Sequence record: PP695294.1
Reading direction: 5' to 3' (one strand)
DNA: 64,000 nt
Part shown: piece by piece, positions 238 through 34,977 of the stretch
Position numbering within the stretch: the stretch's first letter is position 1
How the letters are laid out: every line of letters starts with the position of its first letter
The notes under the pieces: generated by a model
The model's input: the letters and a program-made list of their open reading frames with translations, nothing else
What the model was told of the DNA's origin: nothing
Databases searched by the model: none
Program-made: the position numbers and the translations under genes

Positions 238-2283
238 TTAGCTCTCCCGACGGTAAACTTTGATAGTGGTGTTGAACTGGGTGAGCAGCACACCGCCTTC
301 AGCGATCAGGTCCAGCGTCACAGAGTAACCATTGGATTTATCGTCTGCAGTGAAGTACGCCTTCGGAGTGACGACAGCAACGTTATCGAGACGGCCTTCC
401 AGACGTTCGATAATTTTGTTCTCAATCATCTTCGCACGTTCATCATCCGTCATGGCCGCTTCGCCAGACATGTCCGCCCATACACGGTCGGAAACACGAT
501 AGACGTAGGTCATCATGAAGTTGAACAGGGCGTTGTTCAGTACAGAACGATCTTCGCTGTAGATTGACTGAATCGCCGGAATGAACAAGCGATAGTAGTC
601 GTAGGAACGGGCAGTGATCAGCGACACATCCCAGTCAGACGCATACACTTCGTTGCCTTTCCACGGCATACTCAGGTCAGTCAGATCTTCGATAATCGTC
701 AGTTCGCCACGGCTGAAACGATAAGCCGGTTTTGCACGACCGTCGCCTGCACCCAGGTACTTCGAGAAGAAGTTCGCCAGGGAGTAGTTCATCGGAACAG
801 GCTTCTTGTAGGAAGAGTTCTTGATGAACGCCGATTGGCCGGTGACCATACCACGTGCAGCCGGAGTGCCGTAATAGGCAGATTCCGGTACCGCTGTGAT
901 CAATTCGATCAGGGCGATTTTTGCACTTTCTTCTGTCTGCTCATCGTTACGACCTTGGTTGTAAACGTGAGTCGCCAGCGTCAAGAAGGTGTTACGTGAA
1001 CGACCGATGAAGTTCACGAGCGCAGCTTTAGTATCGAAGCTAAAGCCAGAGTCCCAGAAACAACCCAGCGAGTATTTCAGCTCGTTGTCGTAACGGACTT
1101 TACCGCCATCCGGGAACAGCAGCATTTCACGGCGAACGAGTTCGTCGTAAACGTCGTTGTTCATGGTACCATCGCTACCACCTTGCAGGTAGTGGATGTT
1201 GGATGCGGAGAACACAACTTTACCGGTTTCAGTAGCCGGGTTTACCTGAAGACCATCGTAAGGCTGGCCCAGTAAATCATAGCCGCCAAAGATGTCAACC
1301 ATATACGGGTCAGCAGGCGCATCAGTTGTGATAGCGGCCTGAGCCAAGCCCAGTACAGTTTCCAGGTTCTCGCGATACAGATAGAACTGCTCGAAAGGAC
1401 CATAATCTGGCAGCTCGCCAATGTCAGGCATCGTCTGACGATATGCATCCGCAACAACAACTTCGAAGTCGAGTTGCGTTCTCATCGGCTGATAGTATGC
1501 ATCGGGCTTAAAGCTAAAATTGATGCTACTCATGCCAGTGAGAGTTTTCCACACTACCGGAGAAGTCACGCCTGCCAGGGTTTCGAACCATTGCAGGGTG
1601 TAAACACGACCACCGACTTCATTTTGATAGGAGGAGGTCAGAGCCGGGCTGGATTTCTCGCTGAGTGGGATCAGTTTGAAACCGAAACCGTTGACGTCAG
1701 CACCCGCATACGGGCCTGCGATATCGAACAACGGATACAGCTTCGATTTCGTGCCGCCTTCGCCAGTCATCGTCCCCTCGATAACCACACCTGCGCCGAT
1801 GGCCGGGGTAGTTTCGTCGATTACGACAGAACGGAAGACGATTACCAAACCGTCAACTTGTTCTTTGATCTTGGGCTTGCCCGAGTTGTCGTACTGAACG
1901 ATCCCGTTGCTGTCGCGTTCGTAGGACGGAACTTTCGTTTCGAGTACGTCGGCGAATACGCGAACACTTGCGGTTTTCGCATCTTCAGGGATCAAGCGCT
2001 GATACATACACTCGTTTGCGTTAGCGTTGAACATCGCCTGATAGGGCGTGTTGAACGTCGCGTAGGGGCCTCGCAAGTCAAAGACATTGCGACCAAGCAG
2101 AGACAGTGCATTATCCCCGGTTAACGGGAACGCCTCGTTGTCTACCCCGCGCGCGGCAAAGGTGAAGATCAGCGGCTTATGAATTGCGTCACCCGTAGGG
2201 GTACGCACAAGCTCGGGGACAGAGTTATCCTGCCAACCTTGCTTGTTATTCAACGGCGCGCCGTTTCGTGGAATAAAAGTCAT
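238..2283 (-). CDS. Contractile tail sheath protein (phiKZ gp29-like)
   Basis: 681 aa with a sheath-like C-terminal region (WDSGF..DTK..L.NF...R; IE.RL.GR). Divergent from the virion-terminase operon as in phiKZ-like phages. Confidence 0.82.
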   Translation of the reverse strand: MTFIPRNGAPLNNKQGWQDNSVPELVRTPTGDAIHKPLIFTFAARGVDNEAFPLTGDNALSLLGRNVFDLRGPYATFNTPYQAMFNANANECMYQRLIPEDAKTASVRVFADVLETKVPSYERDSNGIVQYDNSGKPKIKEQVDGLVIVFRSVVIDETTPAIGAGVVIEGTMTGEGGTKSKLYPLFDIAGPYAGADVNGFGFKLIPLSEKSSPALTSSYQNEVGGRVYTLQWFETLAGVTSPVVWKTLTGMSSINFSFKPDAYYQPMRTQLDFEVVVADAYRQTMPDIGELPDYGPFEQFYLYRENLETVLGLAQAAITTDAPADPYMVDIFGGYDLLGQPYDGLQVNPATETGKVVFSASNIHYLQGGSDGTMNNDVYDELVRREMLLFPDGGKVRYDNELKYSLGCFWDSGFSFDTKAALVNFIGRSRNTFLTLATHVYNQGRNDEQTEESAKIALIELITAVPESAYYGTPAARGMVTGQSAFIKNSSYKKPVPMNYSLANFFSKYLGAGDGRAKPAYRFSRGELTIIEDLTDLSMPWKGNEVYASDWDVSLITARSYDYYRLFIPAIQSIYSEDRSVLNNALFNFMMTYVYRVSDRVWADMSGEAAMTDDERAKMIENKIIERLEGRLDNVAVVTPKAYFTADDKSNGYSVTLDLIAEGGVLLTQFNTTIKVYRRES

Positions 2284-2320
2284 GGAACGTCTCCATATAT
2301 TCGTCTTAAAGACCTGATGG

Positions 2321-2339
2321 TCATACTAAGGATCATACT
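2321..2339 (-). promoter_or_regulatory. Tandem TATG late-promoter-like motifs ahead of the sheath gene
   Basis: Minus strand reads AGTATGATCCTTAGTATGA in the 57-nt divergent gap. TATG is the nvRNAP late promoter core in phiKZ. Confidence 0.45.
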
Positions 2340-2340
2340 C

Positions 2341-3246
2341 ATGGCACTCGAAAACGCTTACAGCGGTAATCCCTTTAATGCACTTGACCTTACTCGCACC
2401 AAGGCAGACCTGGAATTAGCCCGTAAACTTAACCAAACTGTCTCACAGTCCGATGAAGTTCATTACGTTGTTGAGACCGCTGATGTAAAACCGTTTCCTT
2501 TGCCGATTGTTATCGGCGACGACGTTTATGTATACGCAGCCACGTTTACCACGCTGGATAAGACCAACGAGCTAAAAATACGAAACCCAGTCGAACACGC
2601 ATTGCGTCTCGACCAGGCTCGCTGGGAATTGGTGTGGAAACGGAGTAATGGTAAGCTTGCTGCACTGATGGCACAGATGCCCTACCACCATGAGATTTTC
2701 AGCAAATGGGTGTCGGATGCGATTACCCACACGTTTGCACTTGCTCCATATCAAAGTGGGCAAATCAAAGCGTTGGCTGCATTGTTCTCTGTGGGACAGT
2801 TCTATAATCACGTCGAAGATGATGTGAAAGCTTTACGTTTGCAGCAGATGCTGGAGCAACAATTAGGCTTACCTGCGGAACTGTTTGAATCAGTGACAGG
2901 CCACACAGAATATCTTTTCCCGCGTAATATCGCAGAATTCGTCGAAATGGTGCAGGCTGCAGATATCACTCCGCGGGTGCGTGACCTGAGCATTCTGTCT
3001 CTGCAGCAGATGTTGAATACCAGCTTCTTCGGGGTGAGTTATGAAAAACAACTCGCTACTAGCGCCATCGAATATCCGCCTAGTCTCTTCGTTATGATTA
3101 AGGCTTGTCTGGATAATAACATGTTTAACCGCAGTCGGTTAGGTGGGATTGTGAAGAAGTCAGACACCGCTAAGAAACGCGATAAGTTTGAATTCACTTA
3201 CAACCTTCTGTTGAATCAAAACACCAAACCACTGAACATCAAGTAA
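2341..3246 (+). CDS. Conserved virion structural protein (start revised to 2341, 301 aa)
   Basis: AAGGA SD before ATG 2341. The track start at 2179 overlaps the sheath gene. Syntenic with phiKZ gp28. Confidence 0.65.
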   Translation: MALENAYSGNPFNALDLTRTKADLELARKLNQTVSQSDEVHYVVETADVKPFPLPIVIGDDVYVYAATFTTLDKTNELKIRNPVEHALRLDQARWELVWKRSNGKLAALMAQMPYHHEIFSKWVSDAITHTFALAPYQSGQIKALAALFSVGQFYNHVEDDVKALRLQQMLEQQLGLPAELFESVTGHTEYLFPRNIAEFVEMVQAADITPRVRDLSILSLQQMLNTSFFGVSYEKQLATSAIEYPPSLFVMIKACLDNNMFNRSRLGGIVKKSDTAKKRDKFEFTYNLLLNQNTKPLNIK

Positions 3247-3256
3247 GAGGCCCACT

Positions 3257-5770
3257 ATGGAGAACTGGCTGGTCGCTCACGCCGTTAAAAATGCGTGGCA
3301 GCGTCCGTACCTCGATGGGGTGTTGAACATTGCGCCTTTTCGATTAACTGAAAAGACCGGAGCGATCGGGTTTTTCAAGCACGGGCGTAATCCGATTCCT
3401 TTACCGGGCGAGGGGTGGTGGCACGCGTTTGTAATTGACAAGCTCCACCTCAACTACGGCAACTTGAGTATCCCTCCTGAGCGCTGGAAGAAACTTACTA
3501 CGTGTGTAAATAACTTCCATGCGTGGATGCAGGTGTACAACGAAGATGGGACAATTATCCCGTCGAACTCTGTGTATTTCTGGCGGACACTCTCTGGTCA
3601 GATTTACATGGCGATTCCGCAAACGGAACGCTACAAGTGGTTAGACGACACGCCGTGTTATCTGCGCATTTATGCTGGTAATGATGGCGGCGAAAACGCT
3701 CCTGTTGTTAAACCGACGTTCATCGAACCGTATAATCCGCCGAACCCACAACAGATCCAGATCGTCTTAGACCGTTATAATCTGTTGAAAGGCCAGAAAA
3801 TCGGCTATGTCGATTTCTGGGTAAACGGAAAGATGATTGCTGATCCTAAGCCCGCGGATATCAAAGCGTGGGACGATGTTGAAATCCGTGTCGATGGGCG
3901 TATTCGTCGTGTGATTGAATACCGTTGTGGGGATTTGCAAACGTTCTACTCAACGCTTGACCAAACACGAAAATACCTGCTGCACATTCCAAAAGGGGAT
4001 GGCATTTGGATTTTCAACAGCGATTGTGAAATTCAGTTGTTGTGGAAAGGCGAGGGACGTTACTACCATCGCCACCGCCATCTGGCCGTACGACAATTGA
4101 CGTGGAACGATCTATCGATTCCTTCGATGCGGATTTCGAAGTACCGCACCGCGTTCAACACCCCGATGAATGATATCGACGAACTAACGATTCGTTTATT
4201 GATACGCGACGATTTCCTTGACCTGAAGCCGCTGTATAATTCCACCCACACGCATGATCTCTATCGTCTTAGCGACGAGCAAATCATCGGTGCGATGGTG
4301 GGGGCAAACTCCAACGTACCAGAGTGGACCGCAGCAGCGCTCGAAGAATCGGCAGCGAATCGGTTAGCGGCGGCCAAACTCCGGAACATCACGCGCGATC
4401 TTTGCACTGATGCGTACGGCTACAACGCTGCTGCACGTTACAGCGCCGACACACCGCAGCGTCTGGAACTTACCTCTGGCGGTTATCGTGGTATTTTGCC
4501 TGACCTACTGGCAACATTGTCGACTGTATACGAATACGATGCCGATGGGTTGCTGTTAGAGCATCACCGTAATGCAGGCTACGATGTTTACATCCCTCGC
4601 AATCCGGAAGCACGAATCATTGAGGCAATTGCAGGTGAAGTCTCAGATGCGGTGAAGATTGTTGACAACGCTCCCGACTTTGAAATTGAGCCAGGTTCGA
4701 ACGTTGGACTGTGGATTCGAATGGTCATCGGGGAGGTTCCAACTAACGACTACTACAAAGCCGAGGAAGGAACGGATTATACCCGCGACGGAAATAAAAT
4801 CACCTGGACCGTAGATCGGACACGACGTCACCCGACAGTGATTTACGACGACTTCCATCTGTTCTTCGAAGTGGATGTTAAGGTGTCGGAAGGTCAGATA
4901 CGTATTCCGATTGTAGCACGTAACCAAGACGGGCAGCAGCGCACGCTGTGGCTACCGATGGAAACGGTTGAAGTGTGGTTGAACAACCACCCACTGGTGC
5001 ACGGTATCGATTACCACACCCGCTGGCCGGAAATTGTGGTGGTTTGTAAAGCATGGATGGCGGACGGGGATACAAATAAAATCTCAGTGCGTTGTCGTGG
5101 CGTGACCGGTGAACTCCGTATTCCTAAACACGGTTTCGTGTCAAGCGGACTGCTGTCTAATAACAGCCAGTTTGATTGCCGTGACGACAAAGTGATTCGT
5201 GTCGTGGGTGGTGGTTCACTGTTACTGCGTGACGAAGTCGTGTTCCGTGAAGACAACACTGTAGGTGTCGATATCGTACAAGACGGGTTCCCGTACTCAG
5301 TCGACGATCCGACTATTCCGTTACGGACGTTGGTAAGCGGCGATACTTACAAGTTGCGCGACACTGCCCGCGATTTGGACACACGCGTTGAGGCTTATTT
5401 GTCTAACTGGTTCCCAACACCACCGCCGGTTAACCCGGTACCGTTGCCGTATCTGTATCACCTCTATTCGCCAACCCTGAACAAGATCTTGTGGGACTAC
5501 TTACAAGGTATTCTGATTCTACGGGAAGACGATCCGGAGTATCGTATCTCGACGTCACAGCTGGATAACATCATGGAGCGTTATAAAGACCTCCTGCCGT
5601 TTGACCCGGCTTATATCGGTTACGATAAAGCGTTTGTGAAACTGCATCCGCATGTGAAGTACGAAACGGTAGAAATCAACGAACTTGGCTTTGCTTTCTT
5701 AGACCGCGTCAATGAACGTTATCTGAATGGCGAAGTGCAGCTTAATCAGTATCTGATAATCAAGGGTTAA
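3257..5770 (+). CDS. Large virion structural protein (tail/baseplate-associated, phiKZ gp27-like position)
   Basis: 837 aa, GAGG SD, tightly packed in the operon before the terminase. Confidence 0.6.
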   Translation: MENWLVAHAVKNAWQRPYLDGVLNIAPFRLTEKTGAIGFFKHGRNPIPLPGEGWWHAFVIDKLHLNYGNLSIPPERWKKLTTCVNNFHAWMQVYNEDGTIIPSNSVYFWRTLSGQIYMAIPQTERYKWLDDTPCYLRIYAGNDGGENAPVVKPTFIEPYNPPNPQQIQIVLDRYNLLKGQKIGYVDFWVNGKMIADPKPADIKAWDDVEIRVDGRIRRVIEYRCGDLQTFYSTLDQTRKYLLHIPKGDGIWIFNSDCEIQLLWKGEGRYYHRHRHLAVRQLTWNDLSIPSMRISKYRTAFNTPMNDIDELTIRLLIRDDFLDLKPLYNSTHTHDLYRLSDEQIIGAMVGANSNVPEWTAAALEESAANRLAAAKLRNITRDLCTDAYGYNAAARYSADTPQRLELTSGGYRGILPDLLATLSTVYEYDADGLLLEHHRNAGYDVYIPRNPEARIIEAIAGEVSDAVKIVDNAPDFEIEPGSNVGLWIRMVIGEVPTNDYYKAEEGTDYTRDGNKITWTVDRTRRHPTVIYDDFHLFFEVDVKVSEGQIRIPIVARNQDGQQRTLWLPMETVEVWLNNHPLVHGIDYHTRWPEIVVVCKAWMADGDTNKISVRCRGVTGELRIPKHGFVSSGLLSNNSQFDCRDDKVIRVVGGGSLLLRDEVVFREDNTVGVDIVQDGFPYSVDDPTIPLRTLVSGDTYKLRDTARDLDTRVEAYLSNWFPTPPPVNPVPLPYLYHLYSPTLNKILWDYLQGILILREDDPEYRISTSQLDNIMERYKDLLPFDPAYIGYDKAFVKLHPHVKYETVEINELGFAFLDRVNERYLNGEVQLNQYLIIKG

Positions 5771-15907: not shown

Positions 15908-15983
15908 GGGGGTATGGCGCAATTGGTAGCGCACCGGTCTCCAAAACCGAAGGTTCGAGGTTCGAAACCTCGTGCCCCCGCCA
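15908..15983 (+). tRNA. trnW: tRNA-Trp(CCA)
   Basis: 76-nt cloverleaf: acceptor GGGGGUA/UGCCCCC, anticodon loop CU-CCA-AA, T-loop UUCGAAA, encoded 3' CCA. Confidence 0.93.
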
Positions 15984-17329: not shown

Positions 17330-17399
17330 GGCTTTGTAGCTCAGGTAGGTAGAGCAACCTCTTCGAGGAAGGTCGCCGGTTCGAGTCCGGTCAAAGCAA
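17330..17399 (+). ncRNA. tRNA-like RNA with a 13-nt anticodon arm (tRNA mimic or pseudo-tRNA)
   Basis: Canonical U8A9, GCUC/GAGC D-arm, AGGUC variable loop and GCCGG-UUCGAGU-CCGGU T-arm; anticodon arm 4 nt short; G1-A72 mismatch; no CCA. Confidence 0.75.
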
Positions 17400-17538: not shown

Positions 17539-18078
17539 ATGAAAGATTTAACCCTACCACCAGGCGACTGGGCACCGTGTCCGGATGCGCCCGATTACTT
17601 CATGGTTTCGAGAAAAGGTGAATTATATTCACTTCGTTCAAACCGTATTGTTTCTCAAAATGTGGTTGGAAATGGGTATTTAGCCCACGTTACAAAAATA
17701 GGCGGAAGGAAAGGTGTTAATGTGGTGCTTAAAACGCACATACAGGTCGCCAAAGCTTTCCACCCTAATCCTGAGAACAAGCCAGAAGTGAACCACAAAA
17801 ACGGTATTAAGTCCTGTAATGAGGACTGGAACGTTGAATGGTCGACGCGACGTGAAAATCACGAACATGCTGTCGAACATGGGCTTTTCTCTTGTATAAA
17901 TGACCATCGTGGTCAACGTTCTCCGAAGATGACTGGAATGGAGATTCGCGAACTCTTAGAAAACCCGAGCGGCAGCCTTAAGCAATGCGCGGAAGAGTAT
18001 AACGTGGATCGTAAAACTATCCAGAACATTCGGAGTAACCCAGCACGTTACTTGTCAATGACATTGACTAAAAAGTAA
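17539..18078 (+). CDS. Free-standing NUMOD4/HNH homing endonuclease
   Basis: Y.VS..G...S N-terminal motif; HIQVAKAF.PNPENKPEVNHKNGIK..N...NVEW.T..EN..HA; C-terminal HTH-like segment; GAGG SD. Confidence 0.9.
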   Translation: MKDLTLPPGDWAPCPDAPDYFMVSRKGELYSLRSNRIVSQNVVGNGYLAHVTKIGGRKGVNVVLKTHIQVAKAFHPNPENKPEVNHKNGIKSCNEDWNVEWSTRRENHEHAVEHGLFSCINDHRGQRSPKMTGMEIRELLENPSGSLKQCAEEYNVDRKTIQNIRSNPARYLSMTLTKK

Positions 18079-18084
18079 CCATCA

Positions 18085-18375
18085 ATTTGTGTTATCCTTA
18101 TCCCGAAGGCATTCGAAATAAGACGCGTATCCACACACGGGTCAAGGATAACACGAACCACTTCCGCGGTCACCGTGTCCATTGCCGCCTACCTGCATGG
18201 GCTGTCCTCCGACACGGTGACTTCGGGCCAACTTACAGGCCAGGGCCGTTTGGGTTTTTCTTACGCATCCATCCAGAGCCACCTCGCGCCCTAGTCTGTA
18301 TACCCCTTTTCTGTTCCTGGTTTGCCAACTAAATCAATTAAGCCTGGTGCGTTGCCCTGGGAACAGAAAACTTAT
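18085..18375 (+). ncRNA. Putative structured ncRNA E (~290 nt)
   Basis: Perfect 11-bp stems 18089-18099/18144-18154 and 18169-18179/18211-18221; 14-bp stem 18307-18320/18357-18370 with G-U pairs. Confidence 0.55.
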
Positions 18376-18458
18376 TCGGTTACACACCGAACCCACCCAC
18401 GAGGGATATGTCGTGGACTACCAATAGAAGCAGCAATAGTAGTAAGAAGGAAAGCAAC

Positions 18459-19280
18459 ATGTTTACAGTTAAACGTGTAATTGATGGTGACCGCATTATT
18501 ACCGAACATGAAAAAGTTCGTATCGGTGACCGTAAGTCTCGTGTATTCCGCGAGGCATTAAAAATGCTCGAGAACGAGCGCTTCGACATCGTTGTCGATG
18601 ATGAAAAGTTAGCCCTTAATCCGGGGTTAAAACGCATTGCCCCTGATGTGCCTGATCCGAACACCATGCTTTTGTCTGATTATTGTAGCTGGTCGCACAG
18701 ATTATATAAAAGTCAGGTTTATGCACACGCGTATTTGCGGCAGCTTTTCCCCAACCTTATTATCCCCGATTTGGAAACGGTCGAGGTGTTTAACTGCAAC
18801 GCACGCGAGTTTATTAGCTACGTGCTAGATAATAAGGGCAACGCTATCTTGGTACTGGCGACAAATTTATGTGAACCAGAAGCCATGGATAGTATCTGCG
18901 GCGAACTCGTTGGTTTCGGTACTCCCCCAGAGAAATTAGGCTGGTACAAACCATCTCCTGATAGCGACATGGCGATCATTGTCTACACTCAGGAAGAACT
19001 GCAACAAGTCGAATTAGAGCCTGGTCCATCTATCGAGTTCACTGGTGTCCAGGAGCAGTCGCAGTGGATTAACGGTGAGTCTGTTGTTACTGTTTTAAAA
19101 GGCGCTCGCCCTGGCGACCGGTCAGTCGATGAACTGATTGGCGCAATGTGCATCGAAGAAGAATCTGGATACGATCCTGATAACCAGATCAGTACCGGTG
19201 CGTTGTACGAACTGTTTTATAAAGGCGACGAAGTCTACGTGGTTAACTCTCACGGTAAGACTACCGACGTCCTTCGCTGA
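18459..19280 (+). CDS. Hypothetical protein (start revised to 18459, 273 aa)
   Basis: AAGGA SD; acidic ORF; followed by a terminator. Confidence 0.7.
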   Translation: MFTVKRVIDGDRIITEHEKVRIGDRKSRVFREALKMLENERFDIVVDDEKLALNPGLKRIAPDVPDPNTMLLSDYCSWSHRLYKSQVYAHAYLRQLFPNLIIPDLETVEVFNCNAREFISYVLDNKGNAILVLATNLCEPEAMDSICGELVGFGTPPEKLGWYKPSPDSDMAIIVYTQEELQQVELEPGPSIEFTGVQEQSQWINGESVVTVLKGARPGDRSVDELIGAMCIEEESGYDPDNQISTGALYELFYKGDEVYVVNSHGKTTDVLR

Positions 19281-19370
19281 ATTAGCTAACGCCCAGTAGC
19301 TATGTTCCTGACGATTAGCCCTCGTCTGACCTTGTAAGACCTTGTAGATTTACATGCCAACACCAGGGAA

Positions 19371-30494: not shown

Positions 30495-32348
30495 ATGGTA
30501 AAAATCGTTGACTCTAACAACAACGCTCAGCAGAACAACACTCAGACTCAAGACACCGCACCACTGGGCGGTCTGGGCAACGAGACTGTAAAAGTGCAAA
30601 CTGCTGTGCCGGGTACTTCTACTGTCAGCCAATTCGATAACGCATTTGGCATCCGCAACATCAGCACCTATGCAATGCACTTCGTCAACCTCCTGGACGA
30701 GCTGAAGAAAAGCAACGAATACCTCAACGCGTTCCGCTGGGGCACCATCGCCGGCGTGGGTAACGAAATGGGTTCCGCGGCGTATGTCGCAGGCCAATGG
30801 CAGGGCCACTGGCTGTACGGTATTATCTTCTTTGAACGCGGTCAGTCTCTGCGTCTGAAAGAAACTACCAACAACGGCCAGGAAGACTACTACACCATCA
30901 CTGAACTGTTCAACAAAGACGTGCTGGCAGTAGTACAGAAAAACATCATGGAAGCGCATGGTCTGACCAATGCGAACTTCATGATCATCAACTCCGTACC
31001 AGACCTGGGTAAAGTTCTGGATGCTGAGTGGGCACGTACTCTGATGGGTCAGATGATGATGGGCATCTTCGGTCGTATCGCAGGCTACCTGGGTACGCTG
31101 AACCTGCGTAAGCATGACCGTTATCAGGCTGCAGTAATGCCGCTGGAAGATGGTGCGGTTGTGGATGCTAACGGCCACGCACAACGTGCTGATTTCGCAA
31201 TCACCGTTGAGCACAGCCCAAGCAACGTATCCGACGCCACTCCGACTCTGCTGGACACCAATCAGGTACAGGTGTATCCGCGTGTATCCGGTACTGGTTT
31301 CGTCAACATGCGTTTCACCGGTCAGAAGCCTGTCGTTAACGGCGTCTACGACCTGAAACAGCTGCAGGCTGAAATCGTAGTAAGTCTGGTCGATTCTCAA
31401 ACTGAAGGTGCAATGGCACCGTATGAACGTCAACTGCTGCTGCTGGCTGCATTTGCAGAAATCGCGGCAATCGGTGGCTGGCGTGACCTGTTTGTGAAAC
31501 GTCTGAACAAACAAGATCGCAAGTTCTCCCGTGTGGCAGAATACCTGTCCTGGGGTGCTGACGCTCGTCCTGATGTATCCAAAATCGACGGTAGCCGTGA
31601 AGCTATCGAAGGTTGCCTGGATATGTTCGCACCGCGTGAAGCAGCACTGGTAGTTAGCCATCGTGCCGGTAACGGTCTGGGTGGTCTGTCTACTATGCTG
31701 TCTGAAATTGCGGTCGGTTACGACAACTCTCTGAAACAGCTGCTCGCTATTCTGAATTCCATGTCCCCGCGTGATCAGAACGGCGAAGTTGTTGCAGCGA
31801 CCAGCTTCACTGCAGTATTTGCTTCTGCACTGAAAGCACAGCTGGGCGATGCCTTCAATGGTACCATCCATTGCAGCCACATCGTGAAAGCAGCCGTACC
31901 GACTGTTTCCGGTGTTTACACCGGTACTGCACAGAAACGTAGCTTCCAGGATATGGACCTGATTTCCGTTGTTACCAAACTGGGTGATAACGCGAACGAC
32001 GTCTATAGCTACCTGAACGCACAGTCCTACAGCCACCGTGAACTGAACGAGCGTCAACAGCGTATCTACATGCTGAAACTGGCCGCTTCTCTGTTCGCAT
32101 CCAAAGCACCGCAAGCTACCGGTGAATCTCTGGATATGGCTATCAACCCGATCTTCGGTAAATGCCTGCTGGACTTCGTCCGTAACAATTGCACCTGGTC
32201 TATGACTGGTGTAAATGCCTACAACACGATGGCGACCTCTCTGTTCTTCAACAACGGTGGGGAAGACTTCACGCTGTCTGGCAACGGCCTGTCTGCAAGC
32301 GGTTCCGATTTCGGTCTGGGCGTGTCTCTGAGCAACTTCAAACTGTAA
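30495..32348 (+). CDS. chmA: Chimallin, phage nuclear shell protein (phiKZ gp54-like)
   Basis: 617 aa with extended N/Q-rich N-arm and low-complexity C-tail. Extreme high-expression codon bias, tandem early promoters, own terminator, and position directly before the nvRNAP gp55-like gene. Assigned by size and synteny. Confidence 0.78.
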   Translation: MVKIVDSNNNAQQNNTQTQDTAPLGGLGNETVKVQTAVPGTSTVSQFDNAFGIRNISTYAMHFVNLLDELKKSNEYLNAFRWGTIAGVGNEMGSAAYVAGQWQGHWLYGIIFFERGQSLRLKETTNNGQEDYYTITELFNKDVLAVVQKNIMEAHGLTNANFMIINSVPDLGKVLDAEWARTLMGQMMMGIFGRIAGYLGTLNLRKHDRYQAAVMPLEDGAVVDANGHAQRADFAITVEHSPSNVSDATPTLLDTNQVQVYPRVSGTGFVNMRFTGQKPVVNGVYDLKQLQAEIVVSLVDSQTEGAMAPYERQLLLLAAFAEIAAIGGWRDLFVKRLNKQDRKFSRVAEYLSWGADARPDVSKIDGSREAIEGCLDMFAPREAALVVSHRAGNGLGGLSTMLSEIAVGYDNSLKQLLAILNSMSPRDQNGEVVAATSFTAVFASALKAQLGDAFNGTIHCSHIVKAAVPTVSGVYTGTAQKRSFQDMDLISVVTKLGDNANDVYSYLNAQSYSHRELNERQQRIYMLKLAASLFASKAPQATGESLDMAINPIFGKCLLDFVRNNCTWSMTGVNAYNTMATSLFFNNGGEDFTLSGNGLSASGSDFGLGVSLSNFKL

Positions 32349-32377: not shown

Positions 32378-32414
32378 GGACGGGGGCTAACGCCTCCGTC
32401 CTTCCCTCTTTTTT
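32378..32414 (+). terminator. Intrinsic terminator
   Basis: GGACGGGGGC-TAAC-GCCTCCGTCC plus T-tract. Confidence 0.75.
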
Positions 32415-32430
32415 TGTTGAGGTTGACAGA

Positions 32431-33798
32431 GTGAGAAAGGTACCAAAATTCTACGGAATATCCGGCCGGTTGGTTAGTCAGGATAACTATTTGTCCGATT
32501 TGCAAATAGAAGCTGCAGCCAAAGGTATTAAACCACCCACTATTATTAACGATGTCGCCGTTAACGGGGATGCGATCGAGGTTGCTGAACTTATCGATCG
32601 CATGGTACAGAACAGAATCGTTGACGAAGAACTGAACTCTGCACCGATTTGTAGTTTGGATTGTCCGGCACCGATCGCGCATCGTTACAATCTCGGTTGT
32701 AAGTGTCCGACGTGTGGCTATGTTGTAACTGAACATCGAATTGAATCCGATGTCTGGTTACGTGCACCTGATGAAATGGGTAACTTCGTCAACCCACGAT
32801 TCTGGGCAATGTTCAATGCTTTCTTTAATAGCAAGTTGAAGAAGTTTGAACGTAACAAGGTCACTATCGAACGTGGTAATGACTTGATGATGTGGATGAT
32901 TGACCCGTATTACCGTATAGAAGAACCAGACGGTAAACGCGCACATGCTGTGAAACGTGTATTGGAAGAACATGGTTTCGTTCGTGGCTTGCGCAATCTG
33001 GTTGATAACCACGTTAGTATCTTTAACATCCTTACCACGCCAGAAGCCTGGAAGGAAATCTTCGCACCTAATCGGCATAACGCCGCTGAAGGTGAACGCT
33101 TACGTTTACAATGGAAGGAGCTATTCGAAACGCAACGTCACGCATTCTTCCCAAGACATTTACCGCTAATCTCCTCTAAACTTATCGTTACTGAGGAAGG
33201 TCGTCGTGGTGTCATGGTAGACCCAGTGTTCACGGGTGCTATTGACGCGGTGAAAAATATCGCGTTGCTCTATACGCGGCGTAAAGCGATCGAACCACGT
33301 TTTCTGATTAGTCGTGCTTTGAAAGCGAACCGTCAGTTAACGTACTTCCACATGGACTTCCGTCGTGAGTCTATGGAAGGTAAACCGGGTGACTATCGTG
33401 CGAAATTGGGTTCTACCCATATCCCGTTCGGTGGTCGTGCAACCATCTCACCTATCTCAGAACCACACGATGCCTGGAAGTTAAAAGCACCATGGCGTTG
33501 GATGGTTGGGTTGATGTCGACCCACATCGAGAACAAACTGCTACGACGGGGTTATTCGTCACGGCAATGTGAGCGTATCGTTGCAAAAGCGGCAATGCAG
33601 TATGACCCGCTTGTAGACGAAATCTTTAAAGAACTGATTCGTGAATCCCCAGGCGGTCTTGGGATCATGGTCATACCGTTACGTAACCCAACGCTGGTAC
33701 AGTTGTCTATTCAAACGCTGTACATCGATGAAGTTGTTACCGATGTTAACCAGTGTTCGCTGCGTATCTCTGACCGTGTGATCAAGATGGCTAACGGT
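32431..33798 (+). CDS. nvRNAP beta-prime N-terminal subunit, exon 1 (phiKZ gp55-like)
   Basis: Zn-ribbon CSLDC...CKCPTC; GKPGDYRAKLG; GGRATISP; LRNPTL; ends ...KMANG at the predicted 5' splice site. Confidence 0.88.
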
Positions 33799-34154
33799 TC
33801 GAAAAGAGCCCCATCGGACGGGAAACCTCTGATGCGTATTCTCCTGAAATGCTGGGAAACCCTAAAGCGTATCTACCAGAAATGGGGACGAAAGTCTGAA
33901 ACAACAGATACGATGGCCTACGCTAAACAATACTGCTAACGGTTGTGATAATGGGTAATCAGCAGCGAAGCCTCGTGAGAGGAACGTTCAACGACTATCG
34001 CTGAAATGCGAGTAGGGGTCCCAGTGGACTTCGAAGTGGGAGAACACCTAAGGCGATAGCTATGGTGAAGATATAGTCTGTGCCTTATCGAGAGATAAGG
34101 AGGGTGTCTTAGCACACCTGCTGTATACGGAAACGGTATACGGTGGACAAACAG
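33799..34154 (+). mobile_element. Group I self-splicing intron, 356 nt, no internal ORF
   Basis: P1 GGUUC-GAAAA-GAGCC with a U-G wobble at 33798; P AAAUGCUGGGAA (33847); Q AAUCAGCAGC (33957); R GUUCAACGACUA (33986); S AAGAUAUAGUC (34068); P3 UUCUCC/GGAGAA; terminal G 34154. Splicing restores MANG-DFDGD in frame. Confidence 0.93.
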
Positions 34155-34382
34155 GATTTCGATGGCGACCAGTTCCAGGTACGTTTGCCAGTCGATGAAA
34201 CTGAGATGAAGTTGGCGCTCCAATTCCGTCCAGATAACGGCTTTATGTCTTCTACTGATGTGGACCGCGTAGAACACGGCATGGTTTTACATAACGAGCT
34301 AATCAGTATGCAGAACCAGTTCCTTATTGAAGCAGATGAGGATGATGAAGAAGGCATTCCGTTGGAAGCGGTGATGGGCTAA
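34155..34382 (+). CDS. nvRNAP beta-prime N-terminal subunit, exon 2 (catalytic DFDGD); spliced product 531 aa
   Basis: Begins GAT TTC GAT GGC GAC (DFDGD), in frame with exon 1 after splicing. Confidence 0.9.
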   Translation, partial: DFDGDQFQVRLPVDETEMKLALQFRPDNGFMSSTDVDRVEHGMVLHNELISMQNQFLIEADEDDEEGIPLEAVMG

Positions 34383-34395
34383 TAGGAGTATTGTA

Positions 34396-34977
34396 ATGTG
34401 GCTACAAGGTAGCACGGTGTGGACGAAACAGACCGAAGGTAGCGGGGCACTCAGCGTATTCAAAGAATCGTTTTCGCTGTCTAGCCTGGCACCCGATCTC
34501 GTTGACCGTGTAAAAGAACATTGTCAGGACTTAATCTCACTGGAGCGTTTCCGTGAAACATTCAGTACCGCACGTAAATTACGTTATAGCGATGCGGTAG
34601 AGATGGTAAGACAGATCGAAGAGTTGGGTGAATTCCAGTTCGCCAATGCTGCTTTACAGCCATTCCTCGTTGCCATGCCGGAATATCGTAAGTTGTATAA
34701 TGACGGTATGGCGACTGGTTATGAGAACGGCTTTTCTCGGTTGGATGTGTTCAAAGGCAATGCGTATATGCGTACCGATGACCACTTCCGCGAAGCAACA
34801 TCGGGCATTTCGACGAAGTACGATGAAGATAAGATTTGGCAATGGGCTACCAATGAAGATCGTGCAGTACGACTGAGTCGAATCGATAAAGTGGATATTC
34901 AACTTAACTGGGCACGCATGTCAGCTTTCGACTGGGAAGATGGTGATCCCTGTTCGGAACTTGGCGCGACGTGTTAA
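34396..34977 (+). CDS. Conserved hypothetical protein (193 aa)
   Basis: AGGAG SD; core-block gene. Confidence 0.7.
   Translation: MWLQGSTVWTKQTEGSGALSVFKESFSLSSLAPDLVDRVKEHCQDLISLERFRETFSTARKLRYSDAVEMVRQIEELGEFQFANAALQPFLVAMPEYRKLYNDGMATGYENGFSRLDVFKGNAYMRTDDHFREATSGISTKYDEDKIWQWATNEDRAVRLSRIDKVDIQLNWARMSAFDWEDGDPCSELGATC

Follow-up and report, generated by a model that had tools for sequence, protein, structure and literature searches.

How does a jumbo phage come to carry an RNA polymerase gene whose reading frame departs from that of its relatives within the codons of the active site? The question is raised by a stretch of 64,000 nucleotides from sequence record PP695294.1 (hereafter the window, numbered from its first letter), in which an open reading frame (ORF) of 502 aa at 32431-33939 passes, within the catalytic motif of a polymerase subunit, into unrelated sequence. 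By megablast, positions 32400-34400 are 100% identical to Salmonella phage 1252 (PP695294, genus Seoulvirus), which is the phage of the window itself, and match 37 further records, nearly all of them SPN3US-like jumbo phages of the genus Seoulvirus. The segment 33799-34154 (+ strand, 356 nt) is, very probably, a structurally intact group I intron without an endonuclease gene, which interrupts the gene for the beta-prime subunit of the non-virion RNA polymerase (nvRNAP) and which is a selfish, mobile polymorphism tolerated through splicing. An earlier inspection of the letters and ORFs of the window (the sequence-only reading) had proposed such an intron, and we therefore indicate below which of its claims stood.

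The intron is recognized by three kinds of evidence: a match to a covariance model, a gap relative to intron-less alleles, and covariation among homologues. The Rfam group I intron family RF00028 matches window positions 33779-34100 (+) over the whole of its model (1-253/253) with 69.4 bits (gathering score 50; E 1.6e-15). This match is unique within the window and within the whole 243-kb record of phage 1252, and SPN3US yields no group I intron match in Rfam. Pairwise alignment of the window with the intron-less SPN3US gene opens one clean gap of 356 nt, and the same gap, with the reading frame restored, is obtained with SPLA1a and MET_P1_082_240. At the site, SPN3US reads ...AAG ATG GCA AAT GGA GAT TTC GAT GGT GAC..., i.e. 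K M A N G D F D G D, which places the insertion directly after Gly and ahead of the first Asp codon in the active-site motif N-(A/G)-D-F-D-G-D. Base 33798 is a T, and base 34154, the last of the gap, is a G. Only one placement of the gap leaves the Asp codon (and thus DFDGD) intact while putting a U at position -1 and a G at the end of the intron; the junction is therefore set at 33798/33799 and 34154/34155, and the predicted ligated sequence is AACGGT↓GATTTC (KMANG↓DFDGDQ; the arrow marks the junction). The 502-aa ORF thus comprises 456 aa of exon 1 followed by 46 aa of intron read-through. Exon read-through aside, no independent + strand ORF of at least 40 aa lies inside 33799-34154, and the P1 loop measures 5 nt. 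Literature searches with SPN3US, nvRNAP and the names of the intron-carrying phages did not turn up a description of the window intron.

These results bear out the structural claims of the sequence-only reading. It had predicted that a group I intron without an ORF interrupts the catalytic DFDGD motif, as now indicated by the Rfam score, the gap and the lack of an internal ORF; the removal of 33799-34154, joining KMANG to DFDGDQ, agrees to the base with the SPN3US alignment; and the junction and peptide that it gave (AACGGT↓GATTTC and MANGDFDGDQFQVR) are encoded directly by the intron-less alleles. It was also right that the last 46 aa of the 502-aa ORF are read-through, and that the ORF track splits and mistranslates the gene, an error shared by the GenBank annotation of 1252, EC001 and SPLA3.

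The interrupted gene corresponds to SPN3US_0023 (gp23; 531 codons, 17704-19299), which is labelled 'putative DNA-directed RNA polymerase beta subunit 1'. Exon 1 (32431-33798, +) contains 456 codons, ends in ...KMANG with GGT as its last codon, and is 97.8% identical, gap-free, to gp23 codons 1-456. Exon 2 (34155-34382, +) contains 75 codons and a stop, is 98.2% identical to gp23 codons 457-531, and begins with the Mg-binding aspartates of the beta-prime subunit, in the sequence DFDGDQFQVR. The two exons (456 + 75 codons) hence account for the 531 codons of gp23, colinearly and without a gap, once removal of the intron has restored the frame. The same contiguity is seen with PHROG 2987 ('RNA polymerase beta subunit'), of which exon 1 covers profile positions 1-417 (E 6e-155) and exon 2 positions 418-477 (E 7.5e-17), with neither gap nor overlap between them. 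Pfam returned no match for either exon or for the neighbouring genes.

Among solved structures, a PDB sequence search with exon 1 found a sole match, chain A of the phiKZ non-virion RNA polymerase (7OGP, 7OGR), whose molecule name is PHIKZ055 + PHIKZ056.1. The alignment with 7OGP_A (E 3.2e-32) pairs query residues 52-455 with chain residues 55-435 and stops at ...KAPN, level with ...KMAN of the window. Exon 2 alone gave no PDB sequence match at E up to 1, because it is too short and too divergent past DFDGDQ. The virion polymerase subunits of SPN3US are gp240, gp42, gp244, gp241 and gp218 (PMC5105663); since gp23 is outside this set and its counterpart in the window matches phiKZ gp55, the gene belongs to the non-virion polymerase. 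By sequence homology, then, the interrupted gene encodes the N-terminal beta-prime fragment of the nvRNAP and is orthologous to SPN3US gp23 and phiKZ gp55. Its annotation is discordant: in the phage 1252 record the two exons are separate hypothetical proteins, EC001 and SPLA3 have two 'beta subunit' genes in place of one, and the annotated start of exon 2 varies from record to record.

The whole anatomy of a group I ribozyme could be located in the 356 nt (all features on the + strand). P1 (33796-33810) is a hairpin, read from the sequence, in which GGU↓UC pairs with GAGCC around a GAAAA loop; U33798 lies opposite G33808, and the 5' splice site directly follows this U. P2 (33812-33834) is a hairpin with a GAAA loop, whose nine pairs are formed in 100% of the aligned cells, four of them with compensation. 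The 5' strand of P3, P4, and P5 with its extensions (P5a-c), which include the P and Q elements, occupy 33839-33964 (helices 2-8 of the structure scored below); P6, J6/7 and the 5' strand of P7, with the R element (UCAACGACUA), occupy 33965-33997 (Rfam match, helices 9-12). P7.1 and P7.2 (33998-34032; helices 13 and 14) form two hairpins, 33998-34011 and 34015-34032, with compensation in 7 of their 10 pairs. The 3' strand of P3, P8, J8/7 and the 3' strand of P7, with the S element (AAGAUAUAGUC), follow at 34038-34078 (helices 2, 12, 15 and 16), P3 and P7 together making up the core pseudoknot. P9 (GAGA loop), P9.1, the terminal P9.2 hairpin (CUGUAUAC/GUAUACGG) and the terminal G34154 complete the intron at 34083-34154 (helices 17-19), P9.2 and the terminal G having been read from the sequence. 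The approximate coordinates of the P, Q, R and S elements are 33847-33862, 33953-33964, 33988-33997 and 34068-34078, so that the complete P/Q/R/S core, the U-G wobble of P1 and the terminal G of the sequence-only reading could all be located. The presence of P7.1 and P7.2 between the 5' strand of P7 and the 3' strand of P3 is the hallmark of subgroup IA, to which the intron is accordingly assigned. The P1/P2 assignment implied by the Rfam model (AAGAUGGC with GCCCCAUCG) was dropped in favour of GGUUC/GAGCC plus a 9-bp P2, which alone covaries in the Raoultella and Vibrio phage introns.

Covariation was scored on an alignment, from the guide sequence to the 3' splice site, of eight introns: those of the window, SPLA3, SaP7, Proteus phage 7, Raoultella phage VB_ZK_P1, Klebsiella phage phiKp_32, Vibrio phage 2 TSL-2019 and Photobacterium phage PDCC-1. 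On this alignment RNAalifold recovered the group I helices, with compensation in 35 of 80 pairs. In the hand-corrected structure (84 pairs in 19 helices, including the P3/P7 pseudoknot and P9), standard pairs were formed in 95.2% of cells, as opposed to 38-44% when the partners were slid by 1-3 columns, and changes on both sides affected 38 of the 84 pairs versus 7-11 in the slid controls; none of 500 shuffles matched the real values of pairing and compensation. The compensatory changes reach the catalytic core (a U-A pair of P7 is C-G in SaP7 and Proteus phage 7) and the 5-bp P1, which covaries with the exon: GGUUC/GAGCC in the window, GGUAA/UUGCC in SaP7, GCUAA/UUGGC in VB_ZK_P1 and GAUAG/CUGUC in Vibrio phage 2 TSL-2019. 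As judged from these sequence comparisons, the RNA fold is under selection. Because all core helices are kept and covary, the intron is not a decaying relic, contrary to one of the two origins that the sequence-only reading had suggested.

Comparison of the Seoulvirus relatives shows that the site is polymorphic. The ORF-less 356-nt intron is found, 98.3-100% identical, in six records (1252, EC001, JN03, Lh1B, SPLA3 and SPLA5c); in three records (SaP7, Proteus phage 7 and probably SPFM1) the insertion is about 1048 nt longer; and about 25 records, including SPN3US, SEGD1, SPLA1a, MET_P1_082_240 and most SPFM phages, contain no intron, as is also the case of the more distant STsAS, SPAsTU and Erwinia phage pEa_SNUABM_29. 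The exons of the intron-less sister phages are 98-99% identical to those of the window, and the intron is therefore dispensable. The last three codons upstream of the site (33790-33798) are GCT AAC GGT in 5/5 intron-carrying alleles examined and GCA AAT GGA in 3/3 intron-less ones, a difference that amounts to three synonymous third-position changes; other polymorphisms do not track the intron. In SPLA1a, for instance, these three bases at the insertion site are the only differences from the window across the 120 nt upstream. The pattern fits co-conversion during homing and selection on the endonuclease target (i.e. for a target-site variant) equally well. Presence or absence at one site, together with altered flanking exon bases, is what characterizes a mobile intron. 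In about a dozen SPFM records (GenBank LR5359xx), the match to the gene is broken into 25-28 short segments rather than one or two, a hint that these assemblies contain numerous small errors or indels here.

The longer insertion is an intron that carries its own endonuclease gene. In SaP7 and Proteus phage 7 it measures 1404 nt, has the identical insertion point (GCT AAC GGT↓...G↓GAT TTY) and contains an ORF of 332 aa with HNH_3 and NUMOD1 domains, which by its domain content is an I-HmuI-like homing endonuclease. This ORF is housed in the P1 loop (~2900-3960 of the retrieved SaP7 locus), closed by a 9-bp stem. The HNH/NUMOD ORF of phiKp_32 (~1421-2489 of its retrieved locus) has the same location, the closing stems measuring 9-14 bp across both lineages. 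The introns of SaP7 and Proteus phage 7 share with the window intron the site, the helices and the internal guide sequence GCC, but differ from it by the endonuclease ORF and by a core that is 76.8% identical. Since the exons of SaP7 are 97.8-98.5% identical to those of the window, the two must be sister intron lineages at one homing site, neither being the parent of the other, and the idea that the window intron is a recent deletion derivative of the SaP7 intron was discarded. That the endonuclease cassette can be cleanly gained or lost follows from the first introns of VB_ZK_P1 and phiKp_32, whose cores are 99.7% identical while an HNH ORF occupies the P1 loop of phiKp_32 only.

The window intron itself encodes no homing endonuclease, and phage 1252 has no cognate one: as a query, the SaP7 protein matches, weakly, only a 46-residue HNH motif (43%, E 1.8e-5) in a free-standing 182-aa ORF, at ~17746-17889 (+) of the window, beside the tRNA cluster. 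The proposal of the sequence-only reading that the intron was mobilised in trans can thus be refined: SaP7, Proteus phage 7 and probably SPFM1 do have an HNH/NUMOD intron at the very same position, but its core, 77% identical, makes it a sister lineage rather than the parent.

Introns are established residents of jumbo-phage polymerase genes. phiKZ gp55 is reported to be intron-split, and gp55 and gp180 are cited as intron-associated, with endonucleases gp56, gp72 and gp179 (PMC11512511); since, moreover, the chain in the solved structure bears the name PHIKZ055 plus PHIKZ056.1, this gene family does yield spliced products. A scheme of the polymerase subunits of SPN3US, phiKZ and 201phi2-1 by Thomas et al. 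(their Figure 7; PMC5105663) includes introns and a homing nuclease. In the gp55 orthologue of the phiKZ-like phage KTN4, Rfam recognizes two group I introns, with 87.5 and 74.7 bits, the second of which is inserted at ...KAPN↓ADFDGDQ, 3 nt upstream of the window site, and encodes a 334-aa HNH protein with 27% identity to the SaP7 intron ORF (E 2e-18). Window intron positions 185-281 find a 76% match within the first KTN4 intron, just upstream of the second. The KTN4 introns lie at ~1925-3120 and 3274-4645 of the retrieved locus, on either side of an exon of about 150 nt, and each adjoins or contains an ORF of roughly 270-335 aa. The phiKZ-type introns thus resemble the window intron in class, host gene and motif; they differ in that their site precedes the Ala codon, whereas that of the window follows the Gly codon, and in that the phiKZ-type intron carries an endonuclease gene and is accompanied by another intron further upstream in the gene, whereas the window copy is ORF-less and the sole intron of its genome.

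A further parallel is PhiPA3 gp210, the HNH endonuclease of an intron in the virion RNA polymerase beta gene gp211/209, which has a role when co-infecting phages compete (Birkholz et al. 2024, PMC11620839). That intron likewise belongs to group I and interrupts an RNA polymerase gene of a nucleus-forming jumbo phage at conserved catalytic aspartates, and its family encodes I-HmuI-like HNH nicking endonucleases (PMC11620839); by contrast with the window intron, it affects the virion enzyme, the beta subunit and another motif, and it encodes an endonuclease, which the window copy does not. The window intron is, accordingly, an unannotated, ORF-less addition to an established class of jumbo-phage RNA polymerase introns, one codon downstream of the site at which phiKZ gp55 is split, and as such the finding will not surprise a specialist.

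Beyond these phages, 54 nt of the window intron core are 89% identical to unannotated sequence of Bacillus phiNIT1-type phages, which in phage BSTP3 sits under a DNA polymerase coding sequence. The window intron presumably shares the subgroup IA2 architecture of the T4 td, nrdB and sunY introns and of the SPO1-type DNA polymerase introns, with P7.1 and P7.2 between P7 and P3'. We also take R and S elements near the consensus and insertion at the catalytic motif of a nucleic-acid enzyme to be common to the window intron and the IA2 phage introns; the latter differ in host gene.

Across genera of nucleus-forming jumbo phages, insertions occupy four positions in the N-A-D-F-D-G-D codons of the nvRNAP beta-prime gene, all inside 12 nt and each matched by a guide sequence: N↓ADFDGD in the phiKZ type (KTN4), N(A/G)↓DFDGD in Seoulvirus and the Raoultella and Klebsiella phages, NAD↓FDGD in the Vibrio and Photobacterium phages, and NADFDG↓D in the Raoultella and Klebsiella phages, where it is the second of two. 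The latter insertion, present in VB_ZK_P1 and phiKp_32 directly after DFDG, is 311 nt long (2860-3170 of each retrieved locus) and leaves a 12-nt micro-exon (GATTTTGACGGT) between the two intervening sequences (locus region 2848-3170). It has a U at position -1, a terminal G, a 6-bp P1-like hairpin and a minimum free energy z-score of -3.4, gave no Rfam match even at E up to 10, and finds relatives only as short stretches in the Aeromonas jumbo phages CF8, ZPAH34, PS1 and PS2. We left it unclassified; it is possibly a divergent group I intron.

In the mechanism that we propose, the primary transcript would fold into the P1-P9.2 ribozyme, free guanosine would attack after U33798 at the U-G wobble of P1, and the freed 5' exon would then attack after the terminal G34154. 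AACGGU would thereby be joined to GAUUUC, yielding a 531-codon frame of the same length as, and colinear with, the intron-less alleles. The intron, which has no homing endonuclease of its own, would be tolerated because it splices. Structure, boundaries and homology together point to splicing, and some considerations weigh against this reading of the locus: the eight aligned introns represent four lineages, so that counts of compensatory cells overstate the independent events; the exon side of P1 contributes just 3 bp (GGU/GCC), 5 bp being reached with two intron-side pairs; and the putative P10, in which UUUCG of exon 2 would pair with CGAAA of the intron, is a by-eye reading only. Were the intron dead, the gene would be truly split, into a 502-aa protein with a junk tail and a 79-aa peptide initiated at GTG 34143, which would assemble like other split RNA polymerase fragments. 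Jumbo-phage RNA polymerases are indeed already built from several gene fragments (PMC7598289), and the annotators of EC001 and SPLA3 did call two 'beta subunit' genes. Such a break would, however, fall within the invariant metal-binding motif, in a sequence whose ribozyme helices are all intact and covarying and whose boundaries display U(-1), a terminal G and exact frame restoration; moreover, GTG 34143 is buried in the P9.2 hairpin with no clear ribosome-binding site (by eye), and the 'exon 2' starts annotated in the various records disagree. We regard a split gene as extremely improbable, the least credible of the explanations considered here.

A functional intron could also have been kept for the benefit of the phage. 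According to this view, put forward in the sequence-only reading as a timing checkpoint, rate-limiting splicing would time the switch from early to middle and late expression. Its premise is sound as far as homology with phiKZ goes: the gene being that of the nvRNAP beta-prime subunit, middle and late transcription would depend on the spliced product, as that reading had claimed, since by homology with phiKZ gp55 this enzyme makes the middle and late transcripts and exon ligation is needed for it to be active. The conserved fold could be invoked as well, but a selfish intron in an essential gene predicts fold conservation equally. More tellingly, the intron is absent from about 25 of roughly 34 close Seoulvirus records despite their near-identical exons, SPLA1a dispenses with it on an upstream sequence that matches the window save for the three synonymous bases, and no regulatory element was found. 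A checkpoint is therefore very unlikely, and we infer that the intron has no regulatory role. A better contender, albeit still a doubtful one, is that the ORF-less intron persists because its presence destroys the target of the HNH endonuclease of SaP7-type relatives, conferring immunity in mixed infections. Consistent with this, co-circulating Seoulviruses have, at exactly this position, an intron with an endonuclease gene, the endonuclease of a jumbo-phage RNA polymerase intron has been shown to be a weapon between co-infecting phages (PMC11620839), and the three synonymous flanking differences track the intron in 8/8 alleles examined. Yet the target of the SaP7 endonuclease and its cleavage are putative, co-conversion during homing accounts equally for the flanking differences, and immunity is a by-product of any intron and need not explain retention. 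A selfish mobile intron tolerated through splicing thus remains the reading that we favour.

Elsewhere in the window, two sequences match the tRNA models, at 15908-15980 (+, 65.6 bits) and at 17330-17399 (+, 40.9 bits), the latter with a shortened anticodon region. Upstream of the polymerase gene, a 617-aa ORF (30495-32348, +) belongs to PHROG 8316, of no known function. In phiKZ, gp54 precedes gp55, and a Vibrio phage record labels the gene upstream of its polymerase gene 'nuclear shell protein'. The 617-aa ORF was accordingly considered as a chimallin candidate on the basis of its position, but this found no support: neither a PDB sequence search nor a BLASTP comparison with the Vibrio phage protein gave a match.

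A practical consequence of the intron is that the catalytic subunit of the nvRNAP is misannotated, as two 'hypothetical' or 'beta subunit 1/2' proteins, in 1252, EC001, Lh1B, JN03, SPLA3 and SPLA5c, several of which are candidate biocontrol or therapy phages. For the biology of the group, the Seoulviruses offer a natural set of three alleles at one site (no intron, ORF-less intron, endonuclease-carrying intron) in exons that are 98-99% identical, and a genetic system exists for SPN3US; the set is suited to tests of homing, marker exclusion and interference competition of the kind shown for PhiPA3 and phiKZ. More broadly, the codons of the polymerase active site are a recurrent intron target across Chimalliviridae genera. 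Tentatively, the N-A-D-F-D-G-D codons may be contested ground in a warfare waged with intron endonucleases among nucleus-forming jumbo phages, in which the Seoulvirus intron would be an immunity allele against SaP7-type HNH endonucleases.

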